Of a DNA stretch of 64,000 bases, positions 9,955 to 44,171 are shown in pieces; within the stretch, counting starts at the first letter, position 1; each line of letters begins with the position of its first letter. Source of the DNA: Podarcis gaigeae. Its lineage: Eukaryota. Position numbers and translations under genes: made by a program. The notes under the pieces were generated by a model. It was not told where the DNA came from, made no database searches, and was given only the letters and a program-made list of their open reading frames with translations. The DNA is taken from the NCBI GenBank assembly GCA_964106915.2, contig OZ066914.1. One strand, written 5' to 3'.

Positions 9955-11062
9955 AATTCGGTTAAATCTTCCTTGCTCTACATTACAGGCTGCAGACCCA
10001 ATTTGTTTGTGGGGGACACGTTCTTCTGTACATGTGTGTGTTATGGAATTCTCTATGCTGGAGTAGGCTAGTGGGAACTGACAAGTGTGATTGTGAGGCA
10101 CGGGGAGAGCCAATTTCATCCCTTACATGTTCTGAAAGTCAGTTGGTGGGTCCTGAATCATTACGGAAGATTGATTGCTCTCTAAGCAACTTCCCATTAA
10201 ATCCTAACCACATAGATTATATGCAATTAAATAACATGCCCGCAGTCAGAGTAATACTTTGATATTTGCTAGCAAGCTGATCCAGTAATCCCTGATAAAT
10301 GGAAGAAAACAACTTCTTACACTATTGACTATTGCTTATAATAAAAATAATGTATTGGAAGGGAGGATGAGAAACATTAATTTACCATTACCTTTCACAT
10401 TATTTGCTATATGAAGTTGTTGAGTTGCTATATTACAGAATAAAATATACAACATTATTTTGGCTGGAGGAGTTGGCAAATTTTGAATTCTGATGTTAGG
10501 CACAGCCTGAAAAGGAGAGTTTCTGTTAAAAGATATGGGGCACAATTTGATCAAGGTGAATACATGTAGGCCTCAATAATTTCAGTGAGAGAGTTAAGCA
10601 CATTTCAAGCTTTCCCAAAGACAACACCCCTCTTTCCCTGGGCTAATAATCAGCATAAGTGATAGGAATAGCGAGGCACACACTGCAGAGAAAATGAGTG
10701 GGTACAGAGAATAATGGAGAAGTTCATGTACCAGTCATTCTGACAATGGCATGTGTTTTTGCCTAGGAAAATCTGCCATATGATTTCACATCCTCAACTG
10801 TAAAGCTAAAGAGATTTATCTAGTTGCAAGTATCTATGCTTATATTGATTTTAAAATATGTCCTTTGCATATGGAACACTGTATTTAAATAGGTCAGTAC
10901 AACACCGTCTCCCACATATTTGCATAATATCAGAAGTGCACTAAAAATACTGACAATCACACCTAGCCTATTGCAATGTATGAATCACTAAAGCTGATAC
11001 ACAGTTCTCCATTTCTAGCTCTATACCTGAGACACCACAGTTTGGGCAGCTTTTGGGATGCC

Positions 11063-27167: not shown

Positions 27168-28494
27168 TATTGGTATTACTGAGCTAGGTGAAGATGGGAG
27201 GAGAAGAATTCGCCTTGCATGGATCAGGTACTAAAAAACCAGCTGAGTGGAATCCTAAGCCCTCAAAGGGAAAAGCTGAAATGCAAAAGACTGTGTGTTG
27301 GTTAATGCAAGTATTAGCAGACGGCAAGATTAAGGAAATGAGAAAACTAGGGATTGGAAAGAGAAGACACTAATAATCACTTCTCATGAGGAAGGGAGAG
27401 TGAACAGAAGTGATTTCTAAAGTTTCACCGTGACTTGTGGTGGCATGGCTGTAACTGAACCCAAGGTTCTTTGTAGTGTAATCAATTCATTTGGGTGGTG
27501 AGCCCTTTATAAGCAGAAGGTGAAAACTTGCATGTTTTCCTCTATCCTCTGAAAGGACACTGTTGGCTCAGGATGTGATGGGGTGACTGAAGGCAGGCAA
27601 GCCTTCCTAGGGAGTGCTGATTCCAACCCTAGCTTCCTTAGATTCTAGTTAATAACGTTTCAAAAACAGAAAAAGGCATTTCTTACATGATATGTAGCAT
27701 TGGCTGTTGCTTTCCACGATGCTCCTGACTAATCCAAAGAAAATAAACAGAGGTGAGAGGCAGGTAAACAGGGAGAAAAGGCAAGGGAAAGGTCAAACTA
27801 TGGCCCCTGAAGGCATCCAAGTATTACAGCAGGCATGAAACACAGGGTTTGTGGACATATTTTGGATCTGTAAGATGTCCAGTTATAGGAAACAGATTTT
27901 CTGGCATTAGCTCTAACACAATGGGCAACCGCTTTAATAACAGTTCTGGACAGAAGGAACATTTTGTTGCTGTTGTTTAGTCGTGTCCGATTCTTCGTGA
28001 CCCCATGGAAGGAACATTAGATACTAGTTAACAGAATTACTATTAAACATATCAATATGTTTCCCTAAATGAAGGTCATGAGAGGTCTCTGGCTAATCAG
28101 AACTCACATGGAGGGAAGACAGTGGTACTTTCCCAGGAAATGTATATTTAGACTTAATCCAATTACTGGTGGGAGAAGATGGAAGAACCCTCAGGCCAAA
28201 AAGGAGCATATGCTTACATTAGATATAGCAAGAAACTAGTTAGGCTTGAAGCTATGTCATCATCAAAATGACTGTTCCTTCCTATGCACAGCTGCTACTA
28301 TAGGAAGATATCCTGTTTAAACCAATGCTTCTGTCTCTGTTACTTTGCAATGGCAACATGCTCATTGCTCAAAGCAAAACCAAAATAGACACAGGGTTCC
28401 AAGGCATATGCTGAGTTTCAGCCGATCTGAGCTAAACCTTAAACTGTGGTTATTTTAACTACGGTATATTTTCTTGAAAAAAACCGGCTTCATA

Positions 28495-28607
28495 GGGTCT
28501 GAAACCACATAAGGCTTGCGTCTGCTCAGTGCCTGGATGGGTGACTACTTGGAAAACACATGAACACTGCTTTGGGTTCCATGGCTGAAGAGAGGCAGGA
28601 TATATCT
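28495..28607 (+). mobile_element. Degenerate 5S rRNA-derived SINE
   Basis: agtgcctggatgggtgact at 28528-28546 resembles the 5S internal control region AGTACTTGGATGGGAGACC and is followed by a non-5S tail. Confidence 0.5.
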
Positions 28608-30081
28608 CTACGAAAACAAACTGGTTTGAAGTTTCAGACAAACCAGTTCTGATAACATGATGAACCACAGTTGCTCATGGACAGTAGCAAAAGATTCTGA
28701 ACTCCTCCTTGCAGCTCTTTATCCAATATCTGAGGATTATTATAAGCTATTATCAAGTGCTTCCTGCAGCTATCCAATCAAAGAACCAGGATATTGAGAG
28801 TTGTGGCAGAATTCTATACCCTTACCCTAAGAGTTATGGAAGAATTCTGTTCTTTTGCTCACCCACCCTGCCTTGACTTCATGCACATCAAGGGTTATGA
28901 TGAGACACTACAAATCCTCTAAAGGGGTAGCATGCCATTTTTACATTTTAGTTTTACGGAGAGATTTTCATTTCAGTTCCATTTCTGGTATTGAAAAAAA
29001 TCCTCTTAGTTTCTGAAGTAAAGAGAACATTTGAGTGGTTCTTTTGGATTATTGCTGCTTCAGAAAAGATTTCAGTCTTGTACAGTTTTCCTGTGGACTG
29101 AGTATGTGTCATTTTAACAAATGAAACAACAACAACTGTTTGCCTCCCATTTGGTTTTACCTGACATTTTCTGTCTTATTCAGAGTCCCACGTTTAACAA
29201 ATGGCAGGCAAAAATAACTTGCTTGAAGATTTAAGAAAGAAAATGTGGGCAAAAAGGTAACAGGTAAAGGAAAACACAGATGGCACATGAAATAATATTT
29301 TACATACCTACATGCAGGGCAAACCTTTGAGAAAAGGCAGTATCTACAGTGACAATTATATTTAGCAATCTTTGTAATGAGCCAAGTAGCACCCCCTGTT
29401 CAGTTAGTTATACAAGCAATCTTGTAAGATACACAACAGAAGCAGACAAGGCCTTATCATCTGGAACCAGAATAGCCAGCTGTTGCTGGACTCCAACTCC
29501 ATCAGCCCCAGGCAGCAAGGCCAATGGTTGGGAATTATGGGAACAATGGGAACCCCAAAGAATCATTAGATGACACCAGAGTCGGGCCAGCTATTAGGCA
29601 GGGTGAGGTCGCTGCCTCAGGTGGCAAAGCCCCCCAAGCAAGCCCATCAGCGCCGATTTCAGGCAAGATCACATCCACTGTGGGCGAGACCTCACCCAAA
29701 ATCTTGCAGAGCATGCAAAAGCTCACTCAAAATCAGCACGATCTTGCCTGAAATGGGCTATAATGGCTGTGGCGCTTCTTTGCCAGCAGATGGAACAGGG
29801 TGTGCAGTAGCAGTTATGGCATCGTCAGTGGCAAGGTGGCACTTCCCATTTTGCTTCAAGTGGCAAAATTGGATGCACCACCCCCGGGTAACTTTCTCTA
29901 ATCTCTTTGTTGGTGCATCTGGAGTGAAACCGAGCTCTTAACCATAGTGGGCGACAAGAACACCGAGGACATTCAGCTCTGTTTAGGTATTATTACAACT
30001 TACTCACAATGGAACAGCAGCTTCTCGGTAGCATTAAAAGGTTCAGGTATGGAAGCAACTGCCTTTGGTTACAGCACTTAC

Positions 30082-30219: not shown

Positions 30220-31689
30220 TTCTTGTGTCCTGACTTAAAAAAAATATTTAGCCCAATGAATTTGTTCAGGCAGTCACGGACAAACACGCTAACCAAAAAG
30301 ACAGAGGGAGGAGATCAATAACAAAACTACATTTCCTAGCCATCTCCCCAAAGATTCAGGTTCTTTTTTCATTACCCAAAAGCTGCCCTGCCCATTTACT
30401 GAAGCTCACAACCCTGCAGCCCTTTTGTGTTGGGAGGGGGGATACAGGCTGGCATTTTAATGCCAAGAAGATCATCTGGAGGCTTCAAAATGCTTCCATG
30501 CATGAGGAGCCCCACTCCCACACCAAATACCCATCTGAAAGCAGCTGCTCATGCTGCTTACCATTCCCACTCACCTCTCCTTTGCCTGTTAAGCAAGCAG
30601 GCAGCAGTGATGAAGAGGAGGAGGGGAGCTAGTGGCAATGAGCTGGTTCAGATGCAATGCTAAGTGCTGGTTTAGCATTATATGAAGGAGTCTTGGGCAA
30701 GCATGGTCTCCCTTCCTCTGCCCTCCCCTGGTGCAGCTGTGGGATGACTTCTGTTTTTAATTCACCATTTACTGTTACACCCAGTGCCTAAACTGTAGCT
30801 AGCTTTAACTATACTTTAGGAAAAGAAGACTTCACAAGCCAACATAATTAAGACAAACAACACTTTGTCTGGGTTCAGACAGAACATTACAATCTTGCCC
30901 TCACAACCATGCCCAAGGAAGATCAGGAAGAGCTGTTACGTCCAAGGCTTGTTCACATAACATTAAGCCATGGTGTTATGCCTTGTGCAATGCAATCAGT
31001 GGCATTATGTCACCACACTATGTGTGGCCCTGCAAGCCAATGAGTGGAAGGAGGAGAAGAGAAGGTAACACACGACACACAAATGATATGCTATACAGGG
31101 CAAGTAGAGGTGACTATATCTCAACTTAATAAGTCAATATATAAGTAAACCTCTTGCCTCCCCCCACTTGCCCCCTTCATAGGATGAGCATTCAGACTGG
31201 GAAACTATACCGTTCAATTTCAAAACAAGCCTGGGCATGAAATAAATTGATTTAATATCCTGGATTGTTTCAACGCTAGGACTTACAGGGTGCTTCCAGA
31301 AGGGGGCTAAATACTGTAAAAGAGATATTGGCAACAGGTTCGTTTTTCTTTTTTAGAAAAACTTATCAGATTTTTACCAGAAATGGTACATTTAGGTTCA
31401 ATTGTGGAGGGGTAAGAATACAAACCGGCCTTTTGATGACATCACCACCTGGCTGCTGCAAGAAAAAGAAAAAAAGCGCTTCCCCGTGCACAAACAGCAC
31501 CACTCCCACCCAAAGCACACCTCTGGAAGCACCTAGTTTCCCTATTTAGACCAAAAAAAGAGGGCACGTGTGGCTTTTGGATTTGATTACTCACCCTACC
31601 AAAGAAAAAGGAATAGTCTCGTTCTTATCTCAGCTTATTAAGCGAAGGCATGATAAATAATCCAAAACGGGCAACATTACATACAGTGG

Positions 31690-40457: not shown

Positions 40458-40509
40458 GCAAAACAGTCCCTGAGGTATAAAATCCTACAAGTGCCTCTCC
40501 TCCTCACAG

Positions 40510-40544
<35 letters not shown>

Positions 40545-40601
40545 TGTAACCAACCATCAGTTTGCTGCCTTTTAACAGTCACCTACCTGAGGAGACCACC
40601 T
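40458..40601 (+). repeat. Left copy of a ~144-bp direct repeat flanking the YR retrotransposon
   Basis: gcaaaacagt.cctgaggtataaaatcc...(TA)n(GA)n...gaggagaccacct recurs at 42974-43227. Confidence 0.92.
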
Positions 40602-40602
40602 T

Positions 40603-41033
40603 ACTTTAAGGGGCAATGGTGTGCCCAGCGTTGGCCTGAAGCTTGGAGGGGAGGGCCCATTACCAGAGATCTAACCTTCCTAGAATTCTTCCCGATTGTA
40701 GTGGCAATCCACTTATGGTCAGAGGTCTTTAGCAACCATAGGGTTTGCTTCCACACCGACAACCAGGCGGTAGTAGCAGTCCTTACTAGGCAGGCCGCGC
40801 ATTCCTCAAGAGTTGGTGCCCTTCTGCGTTCCTTTGTTCTCCGCTGTTTAGAACTTAATATCCACTTCTCTGCTAAATTTGTGCCTGGTGTTAACAATGA
40901 TATCGCGGATGCCCTATCTCGTTTTCAGATGGACCGCTTCCGCTCGTTAGCACCGGATGCTCAGTTACTACCTCAGCCCTTCCCGGAACAGCTGTGGAGC
41001 CTTGGGGACCAGAGTACTGGGAACCAGAAGTGA
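40603..41033 (+). CDS. RNase H domain (C-terminal part of the DIRS/Ngaro RT-RH ORF; 5' truncated)
   Basis: LTFLEFFPIVVA..LW, FHTDNQAVV and GVNNDIADALSR are DIRS RNase HI motifs. The ORF-track N-terminus is host microsatellite sequence. Confidence 0.88.
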
Positions 41034-41923
41034 TTCAGGGAGTATTAGCCTCATTGGCGCCCTCCAAATTGAGATCTTATAAGAAGGCGTGGTCTGATTT
41101 CTTAAAGTTCCGTGAAAAATCCAGTGCCGCCAGGAGCAAAGCCCCTCCCGTTAGGTCTGAGGTCTTGTCCTATCTAGTGCATTTGAAACACCTGGGACGT
41201 GCCCCAAAAACCCTCAACCTACAGGCCGCAGCGATTTCTTTCTTTTGCAAAGCATTATTTTCATCAGACCCGTGCGCTGAGTTTGTCATACGAAAGACCC
41301 TAGAAGGCTGGCGTAGACTGCAGCCCCCAGCCCAGGATGCGAGGAGGCCCATATCTTTTGACATATTTTTCCAAATTCATAAAAGGTTGCGAACGGTCTG
41401 TTGGTCAAAGTATGAGGCGCGCTTGTTTTCAGCGGCATACTCCATCGCCTTTTTCGGGGCAATGCGTGTGGGTGAGGTAGTTTTTGAGGAAGGTCAGCTT
41501 GGCTCCTCCCGGGGCTTACTGTTGAGTGACATTACACTTTCACGTGAAGATTTGGTCGTGCGGATTCGTAGTTCCAAGACAGACCAGTTCGGGAGGGGTG
41601 CTCTGGTCCGGCTACCGGCAACAGGGGAACTAGGCCCGTGTCCGGTGAAGGACACAAGGCGCTTCTTGTTTATGAGACCTAACATGGCGGGGCCTTTATT
41701 GATCCATGCAAATGGCGTACCCCTGACGCGGCACCAGTTCACCAGGGTCATGCGCTTAGCACTTAAAGCTTGTGGCCTCCCACCAGCAGATTTCGCGGCG
41801 CACTCCTTTAGGATCGGAGCGGCCACCACGGCAATGCACCTGAGCCTTGCGGCCAAGAGGATTAAGGATCTAGGCCGCTGGAAGTCGGACGCATACAAAC
41901 GCTACCTGAGAAAGAATTTATGA
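40994..41923 (+). CDS. Tyrosine recombinase (DIRS/Ngaro YR) with N-terminal SAM-like domain
   Basis: Catalytic set present: FFGAMRVGE (R), SKTDQ (K), HSFRIGAAT (HxxR), GRW, AYKRY (Y); overlaps RH in the -1 frame; no N-terminal ATG. Confidence 0.92.
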   Translation: MEPWGPEYWEPEVIQGVLASLAPSKLRSYKKAWSDFLKFREKSSAARSKAPPVRSEVLSYLVHLKHLGRAPKTLNLQAAAISFFCKALFSSDPCAEFVIRKTLEGWRRLQPPAQDARRPISFDIFFQIHKRLRTVCWSKYEARLFSAAYSIAFFGAMRVGEVVFEEGQLGSSRGLLLSDITLSREDLVVRIRSSKTDQFGRGALVRLPATGELGPCPVKDTRRFLFMRPNMAGPLLIHANGVPLTRHQFTRVMRLALKACGLPPADFAAHSFRIGAATTAMHLSLAAKRIKDLGRWKSDAYKRYLRKNL

Positions 41924-41986: not shown

Positions 41987-42550
41987 GTGCGCGTCTGGAT
42001 AATCGGGCACAGCATAGTGCACTGGGCCGGGGTCCGCGCCATCAATTCCGGTCTGGGGCCGCGACTGGGCTTGCCGGATGGCATCACGATATCCTGGGTC
42101 TCTCGGAGAGGAATGCGTTGGGCTGAGATGTTGCCCGCATTTAAGACCAGAGTCGCGAGAGAGGGCCCCCCGGATGCTTTACTTATACAATTGGGTGAAA
42201 ACGACCTGGCCTATAGAAAGGCGGCCGATTTGCAGTGGCACATATTTGGTGACCTGGAGGAGCTTAAGACCGCTTACCCAAACCTCACAATCATTTGGGC
42301 CTCCTTGATGGAGAGGCGGGTTTGGAGAGATTGCAGGTGCCCGATGGCCATAAATAGGGCAAGGAAAGCCGTGGATCGGGCGGTGGTGCGTAGAGTGGCA
42401 GCCCTGGGGGGAAAGGTCATACGACACCCGGGCATTCGTTTCAATGGTGAGGCCCTCTACCGGTTTGATGGCGTGTATCTGTCTGATGCAGGAAATGATA
42501 TATGGCTGGAGGATATAGCTATGGGGATAAGGGATTGGTTTCAGGCATGA
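41987..42550 (+). CDS. SGNH/GDSL-like hydrolase of the Ngaro element
   Basis: Block I IIGHS, block II RGMRW, block III QLGENDL, block V DGVYLS (His replaced by Tyr). Confidence 0.85.
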   Translation: MRVWIIGHSIVHWAGVRAINSGLGPRLGLPDGITISWVSRRGMRWAEMLPAFKTRVAREGPPDALLIQLGENDLAYRKAADLQWHIFGDLEELKTAYPNLTIIWASLMERRVWRDCRCPMAINRARKAVDRAVVRRVAALGGKVIRHPGIRFNGEALYRFDGVYLSDAGNDIWLEDIAMGIRDWFQA

Positions 42551-42877
42551 GAGGATTGGCGGCGAGCGTTTGCTCGTGTGGCGGTAGGCATTGGTAAGAA
42601 GGGGTTAAGACGATGTGGGGGGGGGGAGGAACGCCATCACCTCCCCCCAGCGAGCGAAGGGTGGTCCGTTAAAGGACCCCGGGGGGCGTGGCCCTGTCCG
42701 AAGCCTATGGAGGTGTGGGCCAAAGGCACGCCCCAGAGCGGTGACCCGGGGGAGCTCCTAGTCGACGTGCCTCGCGGGAGTCTCCCCCGATATAAGGTTA
42801 ACCCTTCCCCGTGTCTCCAGCAAATGGGCTGGAGCCGGATAGCCGTTAGGACCAATGCCTATGCCAATGCCTCTCAT
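42547..42877 (+). ncRNA. Predicted structured cis-RNA in the 3' region of the retrotransposon
   Basis: Nine mutually compatible helices found by eye (see findings). Confidence 0.6.
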
Positions 42878-42973
42878 TCCTGAATTCAATAAAGTTGTGG
42901 CCTAATTCGCCCAATTAACCTTACATACGGTGTCTTGTGTCTTTATTTCCTGGTGGGGGCGGGAACTCGCCAC

Positions 42974-43119
42974 GCAAAACAGTGCCTGAGGTATAAAATC
43001 CTACAAGTGCCTCTCCTCCTCACAGTATATATATATAAAGTGTGCATGCACACGAAAGCTCATACCAAGAACTGACTTAGTTGGTCTTTAAGGTGCTACT
43101 GGAAGGAATTTTTTTTGTT

Positions 43120-43170
<51 letters not shown>

Positions 43171-43227
43171 TGTAACCAACCATCAGTTTGCTGCCTTTTA
43201 ACAGTCACCTACCTGAGGAGACCACCT
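42974..43227 (+). repeat. Right copy of the flanking direct repeat, interrupted by a Penelope fragment
   Basis: Matches 40458-40601 except one substitution, microsatellite length and an ~83-bp insert. Confidence 0.92.
43038..43120 (+). mobile_element. Penelope-like element terminal fragment with partial hammerhead ribozyme
   Basis: GTGTGCATGCACAC-GAAAGCTCA followed by ttagttggtctttaaggtgctactgga, inserted in (TA)n. Confidence 0.7.
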
Positions 43228-44171
43228 CACTCTGCCTAGGGGTAGACCAGCCTATACTAGTGACTGGCCTGTAGTAGTCCTTGTTTTGTCTTCTGTGGAA
43301 ACGTTAGAGATGATGGTCTTTTTCTAAAACAAAAATCTGTTAGTGTGCATGTTCATGTGAAGTAGTTTAATCTTCCAGCCACCAGTAACTGCTTATCCAA
43401 GTAGTAAATGTTGTTCAACTTTTTAATGCTGTAGTTTTCCATAAGAAGTGCAACCAGGTCCATTGTGAGATTATAATTATTCTATTAAACATCCTTTTAA
43501 AAAAAGAAATGGATACGATCAGTTTACTCACACACTTGATTCAGAAAACAGGGCAGGACAGATGATTTCTGAAGATTGCTGTATAGAAGGCACCTAGTGA
43601 TGTGTTTGTAAGTGAGCTCACATACATGTGCTCAAGCAAGCACATGTATGCTCAAGCACTCAAGCAAGCACTTGGTGTGAAAACAGTGGTGTAAGCAATC
43701 AAATGTGTGTCTGTTTTCATCTGTAAAATGTTGGAGGGTATGTAGGATTTATGAAGTCACTAGGTTCTGATTTGGTGAAAGTCAGGTCTAAAGTGTTTGG
43801 TAATGGGACAAACCTGGCATAAGATGGGGAGGAGGAAGTTTGGAGTAAGAAGGGTAGAAAATAAGCAGGAGGATGACTGCTGGCCCACATGCCCCTGAAG
43901 TACCTTTGTGCAGTTCTCTAGGACATGTGAAAATGGCCAAAGACACACTTCTTTTTAAAAGTGCCGAATCCATAGGACTACAGAGATGCCAGAAAGTTCT
44001 GCTTTGCCCTGCCCTGCATCTCTTCATTCTTCTGAAGAATGATCAAGAGATGCTTGGAGTCATACATAAAAAGTACACCTTTCAGGCACTGCAAATGTGG
44101 CACCAGCAGATTCCCACAGGATGCCCTCACCTCCCTGAAATTAGAATTGAAAGCTGCATTCTATTGTAGCT

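Follow-up and report, generated by a model that had tools for sequence, protein, structure and literature searches.

A conserved, structured RNA domain in the terminal repeat of Ngaro-type retrotransposons of lizards

What is the RNA structure that lies between the last gene and the polyadenylation (poly(A)) signal of a Ngaro-type retrotransposon, and what might it do? The question is raised by a 64,000-nucleotide (nt) stretch of Podarcis gaigeae DNA (contig OZ066914.1; hereafter the window), which holds a 5'-truncated copy of such an element with tyrosine recombinase and SGNH/GDSL hydrolase open reading frames (ORFs). An earlier note on this DNA had described a nested, multi-branched structure of ~330 nt between the hydrolase stop codon and AATAAA, and had proposed that it is a selected cis-acting RNA without known description. 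We find that the structure, a non-coding domain of ~350 nt on the sense-strand RNA, is conserved, and that its two long closing helices surround a multi-branch core made up of five to six hairpins. The domain is under selection and is part of the element's terminal repeat.

Region 42547-42877 folds as RNA with a minimum free energy (MFE) of -176.4 kcal/mol, compared with -140.5 ± 5.4 kcal/mol for 100 dinucleotide shuffles (z -6.6), none of which folds as well. Once the full-length outer helix is included (42534-42890, + strand), the z-score reaches -7.6. By this measure the structured RNA is real, and all helices listed in the note, except one, are found where it had placed them. The outer helix (P1) exists but is longer than had been noted (25 base pairs (bp); Table 1). 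It extends 14 nt into the hydrolase ORF, runs across the stop codon and reaches onto AAU of AAUAAA. The helix that did not hold up, 42598-42608/42798-42807, is possible only in the lineage of the window copy; in all relatives the segment equivalent to 42801-42807 pairs instead with the one at 42656-42662.

To follow the fold through evolution, we fetched DNA around recombinase homologs; the copies compared represent five species and are related by descent. Seven copies located directly after the hydrolase ORF (termed B1 below), namely those of the window, three Podarcis lineages, Zootoca, Lacerta and the gecko Eublepharis, were folded singly and revealed one common plan. It comprises a long P1, the P2 hairpin, P3 and a multi-branch core with its five to six hairpins, always in the same order, and z-scores range from -5.3 to -8.4 across the seven lineages. 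P2 is present in all seven copies; its base is GAGC/GCUC throughout, and its tip varies. Identity to the window sequence is 92% for the closest Podarcis copy, 80% for the second Podarcis copy and 65-73% for Zootoca and Lacerta, while the gecko sequence is barely alignable. Nevertheless, the gecko element shares the architecture even though its recombinase is only 45% identical. Between the window and the closest Podarcis copy, B (92% identity) is thus better conserved than the coding DNA (83%).

The pairing itself is conserved. A covariance model (R1), built on the inner domain (window 42654-42809), identified 13 distinct copies in the fetched loci. Its matches outside the model set are a partial Lacerta copy (E 3e-9), the gecko copy (E 2e-5) and a nested Podarcis copy (E 2e-4). 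In the R1 alignment of the inner domain 88.9% of the cells are paired, compared with 76.0 ± 1.2% after shuffling. Both sides have changed in 29 of the 43 pairs (13.8 ± 2.4 after shuffling; 0/500 shuffles as high), which is the kind of compensatory change that the note had proposed to look for. All five measures used for the inner domain beat 500 of 500 shuffles, and pairing drops to 43-57% if partners are moved by 1-3 columns. For the outer helices we used a sequence-only MAFFT alignment, in which 87.3% of the cells are paired compared with 81.9 ± 1.2% in shuffles (0/500 as high) and 35-46% in slid controls. In the same alignment P1 has changed on both sides at 7 of 18 pairs. Some of these changes affect third positions of the codons for the C-terminal end of the hydrolase; thus, coding and pairing constraints overlap there. 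P3 is paired in 96% of the cells (89% in shuffles), and the covariation of P5 is not significant on the MAFFT alignment.

Which strand folds? The z-scores are alike for both strands and had to be rejected as a basis for the choice. The strands are separated by RNAalifold energies and by the balance between G-U and A-C appositions. For sequence-only alignments the plus strand gives -64.4 kcal/mol (45 G-U, 13 A-C) and the minus strand -45.2 kcal/mol (23 and 21). For the inner domain the respective values are -35.0 (34 G-U, 7 A-C) and -17.1 kcal/mol (12 and 8). Since the excess of G-U over A-C is confined to the sense strand, it is the sense strand that folds. This points to RNA or the plus DNA strand as the folding molecule, and speaks against sites in duplex DNA and against the first complementary DNA (cDNA) strand. 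The covariation in about ten lineages, the sense-strand G-U bias and the conservation above that of coding DNA bear out the earlier proposal of a selected cis-acting RNA.

Coding was considered as well. In the window, the hydrolase frame remains open for another 110 codons beyond its stop (42551-42883). In all other lineages it closes within 0-34 codons, even in the Podarcis copy that is 92% identical, and coding by stop-codon read-through was therefore rejected. As the open frame is conserved in no relative and the sequence is G+C-rich, we take it as chance.

The fold is a feature of squamates. The Anolis sagrei element retains a homologous long-range helix that joins the stop-codon region to the 3' part of the repeat (z -4.4), and R1 does not detect this copy. 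Frog relatives, which had been suggested for comparison, do not appear to share the fold: the one frog copy examined (Eleutherodactylus coqui) has no excess structure (z -0.5).

Two further copies deserve a separate mention. In the closest Podarcis copy (L004) the recombinase gene is split by an insert of ~17 kb, and ~1.3 kb separates the hydrolase fragment from the domain (segments 10316-10813, 28081-29034 and 30348-30840); the domain still folds (z -5.7). A diverged copy (L001:100060-100380), with P3 arms AAGGCATTGGTTC and GAACCAATGCCT, is nested between hydrolase fragments of another element; it is the nested Podarcis copy that R1 detects at E 2e-4.

Where does the domain reside in the complete element? 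The split direct repeats of Ngaro elements have been described as A1-ORFs-B1-A2-B2 (Goodwin and Poulter 2004, as summarised in PMC9210276). In complete relatives the stretch that follows the hydrolase gene recurs ~760-810 nt further 3' with 99-100% identity, and the fold therefore occupies the initial three quarters of unit B. That the structure in the note belongs to the terminal split direct repeats, and hence is present twice in complete elements, had gone unrecognised. Both B1 and B2 are found in the Zootoca, Lacerta, Podarcis, gecko and Anolis relatives, and their identity starts and stops at homologous points in all of these elements. Unlike them, the window copy has B1 only (A1, A2 and B2 were not found in it); the L004 and L009 copies have a single B as well. 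A1 equals A2 in Lacerta, Podarcis, gecko and Anolis; in Zootoca, A1 is reduced to a trace of 60 nt. Since A1 matches just the first ~205 nt of the B1-B2 spacer, the complete layout is A1-internal-B1-A2-C-B2. Segment C, located between A2 and B2, is unique and measures ~180 nt in lacertids and ~55 nt in the gecko (L007:12178-12360, L001:102071-102250 and L008:12241-12295). It has no counterpart after A1, so that the layout departs from the textbook A1-B1A2B2. Within C, the block GGTTTT(C/T)GCCT(A/G)C is conserved and is present also in Anolis. Because the fold ends at the element's poly(A) signal, it represents the 3'-terminal domain of the predicted element transcripts.

At the B1/A2 junction of one Podarcis element (L001:101853-101869) there is a perfect 7-bp inverted repeat around a trinucleotide, AACACGC-AAA-GCGTGTT, which is reminiscent of a recombinase core site. 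In Zootoca, too, part of the junction is palindromic; that of Lacerta is not obviously so.

Table 1. Features of the fold, of the repeat unit and of the element in the window.
Feature	Position	Strand	Remarks
P1, 5' arm	42534-42560	+	last hydrolase codons, stop codon and 10 nt more; outside unit B
P2 hairpin	42562-42577	+	outside unit B; specific to the B1 context
P3, 5' arm	42584-42595	+	TAGGCATTGGT; partner ACCAATGCCTA at 42851-42862
P5, G-rich hairpin	42616-42649	+	covariation not significant on the MAFFT alignment
Inner domain	42656-42807	+	P6 encloses P7, P8 and P9
P6	42656-42662 with 42801-42807	+	conserved pairing
P7 hairpin	42663-42678	+	loop GUUAAA
P8 hairpin	42683-42734	+	
P9 hairpin	42747-42789	+	
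P10 hairpin	42809-42838	+	in every lineage's own fold except Pm9B1 (L009)
P3, 3' arm	42851-42862	+	ACCAATGCCTA
P1, 3' arm	42863-42890	+	inside unit B; end overlaps AAU of the poly(A) hexamer
AATAAA poly(A) signal	42888-42893	+	within AATAAAGTTGTGGCC
X' (AAGTTGTGGC)	42892-42901	+	partner of X (GTCACAACTT) in complete relatives
Unit B (B1 copy)	42579-42979	+	from TGGCGG to CACGCAAA
RNase H tail of the 5'-truncated Ngaro-type element	40606-41033	+	ORF; weak RVT_3 match
Tyrosine recombinase ORF	40994-41923	+	weak Phage_integrase match
SGNH/GDSL hydrolase ORF	41987-42550	+	stop codon TGA at 42548-42550

The two copies of B are closed by different clamps, each of which draws on neighboring sequence. 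The clamp of B1 is P1, whose 5' arm comes from the end of the hydrolase gene. As this arm lies outside unit B, it is available only beside B1. The clamp of B2 is a helix beside AATAAA, formed by X (GTCACAACTT) and X' (AAGTTGTGGC). X, sometimes extended by TGT, is the end of segment C and is found solely directly upstream of B2-type copies; the window copy has none. X', which carries a 5' ATA extension in some copies, follows and overlaps AATAAA and pairs with X over 10-13 bp. The pairing is kept from lacertids to the gecko (L006:15414-15423/15745-15754, L007:12336-12348/12660-12672, L001:102228-102237/102575-102584 and L008:12276-12288/12613-12625), and Anolis has a partial match only. X:X' shows no covariation because both partners are invariant. 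The sequence AATAAAGTTGTGGCC, which contains AATAAA, is likewise invariant wherever the hexamer is intact in the B copies of lacertids and the gecko, and the X:X' pairing may explain this invariance. When the whole B1-A2-C-B2 region is folded, the arms of B1 and B2 swap partners at equal or better energy; since the MFE fold exchanges arms of identical copies, thermodynamics cannot tell which X' pairs with X. A near-identical motif, AATAAAAGCTGTGGCC, occurs at the poly(A) signal of the frog Ngaro copy (L011:14761-14776), where the structured domain is absent. A search for conserved pairing between the 5' leader and B returned only noise.

As for function, we favor, at a probability of roughly 45%, a cis-acting replication signal at the 3' end of the element RNA. 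The structured repeat would be recognized by the element's own Gag or reverse transcriptase (RT), and this recognition would serve packaging, initiation of first-strand cDNA or a B2-to-B1 template switch that rebuilds the ends. We lean towards replication because the domain lies within the repeat that is copied by replication, because it sits where cDNA synthesis must begin, because pairing alone would not require P3 and several loops to be as invariant as they are, and because the primer of DIRS-type elements is unknown, as stated explicitly for DIRS-1 (PMC7192593). DIRS-1 is comparable in that it is a tyrosine-recombinase retrotransposon with a cis element close to its 3' end that is needed or proposed in replication. 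Unlike the Ngaro elements, it has inverted terminal repeats and an internal complementary region, and its proposed 3' hairpin is only 14 nt long (PMC7192593). The two show no homology.

The placement of the domain has parallels elsewhere. Structured RNA also occurs in terminal repeats that are present twice on genomic RNA in the case of the TAR (trans-activation response) and poly(A) hairpins in the R region of human immunodeficiency virus type 1 (HIV-1) and of epsilon in the terminal redundancy of hepadnaviruses. In the retroviral R hairpins, as here, the poly(A) hexamer is at the base of a helix, and packaging, priming and strand-transfer roles have been proposed. However, the Ngaro fold is 5-10 times larger, multi-branched and without sequence relation to either. 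Retroviruses and hepadnaviruses hence provide precedents for a cis-acting structured RNA inside a terminal repeat. The fold reported here is not known from earlier work, and neither are its size, its pair of clamps and segment C. The searchable papers on Ngaro and DIRS terminal repeats treat them as sequence repeats and none mentions an RNA fold, which agrees with the earlier view that the fold is undescribed.

A more specific version of the replication role centers on the B2 clamp. Retroelement RNAs do use intramolecular pairings of this kind, such as that in Tf1 self-priming and the CYC5/CYC3 cyclisation pair of Ty1. The X/X' complementarity is likewise intramolecular, 10-13 nt long and adjacent to a possible start of cDNA. 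It differs in that X lies in an internal spacer rather than at the RNA 5' end, and in that X:X' is invariant and does not covary. Clamped B might then be an initiation platform for Ngaro reverse transcription, in which X (from C) pairs with X' 3' of AAUAAA and supplies or positions the primer, with B acting as an R-like repeat for a B2-to-B1 transfer. We regard this version as quite unlikely.

Several observations weigh against a replication signal in general. P1 is a B1-specific helix under selection, which is unexpected if only the 3'-terminal B2 copy mattered and fits a role at the messenger RNA (mRNA) level equally well. A Tf1-like cleave-and-prime scheme on X:X' would lose segment C, leaving its inheritance unexplained. 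The fold is weaker in Anolis and absent in the frog copy, and therefore it is no general requirement of Ngaro elements. Finally, phylogeny is not taken into account by the shuffle controls, and the alignment produced by the covariance model is biased towards the modelled structure.

The main rival is an mRNA 3'-end element that acts through host factors only, in poly(A) site use, in stability (e.g. by drawing the stop codon towards the poly(A) tail) or in export of unspliced multi-ORF RNA. It accounts for the location of the domain between the last stop codon and AAUAAA, and for the fact that both clamps end at the hexamer, P1 covering AAU and X:X' extending up to AUAAA. It also suits the covariation of P1 across the stop codon and the copies that have a single B (window, L004 and L009). 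Since P1 is specific to B1, transcripts ending at B1 seem to matter. Unspliced retroelement RNAs are indeed known to carry long structured non-coding segments at this place, downstream of the last stop codon and ahead of the poly(A) signal, as 3'-proximal transport and stability elements: the constitutive transport element (CTE) of Mason-Pfizer monkey virus (MPMV), the RNA transport element (RTE) of intracisternal A-particles (IAP) and the stability element of Rous sarcoma virus (RSV). Unlike these, the B domain belongs to a terminal repeat and has context-specific clamps. Moreover, the B copies of four species (window, Zootoca L006, gecko L008 and Anolis L010) gave no match at E <= 1 to Rfam 15, which includes ribozymes, transport families and triple-helix stability elements. 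The hexamer argues against the rival as well. In thermodynamic modelling, its opening energy is 1.9-3.2 kcal/mol in B1 and 2.7-5.9 kcal/mol in B2 (Zootoca, Lacerta, Podarcis and gecko), it is open in both copies of Anolis, and its accessibility does not differ consistently. These values do not support an occlusion switch of the retroviral type, in which the hexamer would be less accessible in B1, the copy to be bypassed, than in B2, the copy to be used. In Anolis, furthermore, the closing helix stops ~60 nt before a fully accessible hexamer. Nor does the rival account for the near-invariant sequence of P3. On balance, we consider a purely host-directed 3'-end element rather unlikely.

Could the fold act at the DNA stage instead? 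Plus-strand single-stranded DNA might fold, or the hairpins of B might promote annealing or strand transfer between B copies during end regeneration. End regeneration must proceed through repeat B, the arms of B1 and B2 are interchangeable in the folding described above, and single-stranded cDNA intermediates are documented for DIRS-1 (PMC7192593). However, the G-U bias excludes the first (minus) cDNA strand, and G-T pairs are weak in DNA. P1 and X:X' also draw on sequence outside B, which suggests that each copy folds locally and autonomously. We therefore rate a DNA-stage role as very unlikely.

Binding sites for proteins in duplex DNA, i.e. nested inverted repeats that the recombinase or host transcription factors (CCAAT-like motifs) would bind, are harder still to reconcile with the data. 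The motif GGCATTGG / CCAATGCC does occur twice per orientation and is nearly invariant, and the minus strand has about the same z-score. Nevertheless, the arms of the inverted repeats lie 250-330 bp apart, unlike those of recombinase core sites; most helices covary in sequence, and thus pairing rather than motif is conserved; and the strand-asymmetric G-U excess is not expected of duplex DNA. Such sites are scarcely probable. An unrecognized self-cleaving ribozyme, for which the large conserved multi-branch fold and some invariant unpaired bases could speak, is the least probable explanation of all, given that Rfam ribozymes gave no match and that there is no obvious need for processing here.

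The host element agrees with the Ngaro assignment. An RNase H tail followed by the recombinase ORF is the gene order of Ngaro-type elements, and an SGNH hydrolase downstream of the recombinase marks the vertebrate Ngaro subgroup. RT and gag are missing in the window copy due to the 5' truncation; nucleotide homology with the Zootoca and Lacerta elements begins at 40601-40602. The recombinase has 463 homologs at E <= 1e-10. The best come from Podarcis muralis (83% identity to an 'integrase/recombinase xerD homolog'), followed by Zootoca, Lacerta, Eublepharis (45%), Anolis (40%) and frogs, an order that points to a lacertid-like lizard genome. The match of the hydrolase to Pfam PF13472 is weak (E 0.0015) and falls under Pfam's own cut-off, and its homologs in lizards are 41-74% identical across the matched parts (up to E 7e-77).

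The truncated element is flanked by direct repeats that are 97-98% identical (40458-40605 and 42974-43231), each of which holds a (TA)n(GA)n microsatellite. The second repeat has an extra insert of ~79 nt (43038-43116) that matches dispersed repeats in Podarcis and Lacerta loci (85-89%). It starts within the canonical B terminus CACGCAAA, at GCAAA; the 3' end of the element is at 42979.

The domain provides a concrete object for the question of how DIRS, Ngaro and PAT elements start reverse transcription and rebuild their ends. It is a candidate new RNA family for Rfam, and it offers a case in which the last codons of a gene and its stop codon are under joint coding and RNA-pairing constraint.
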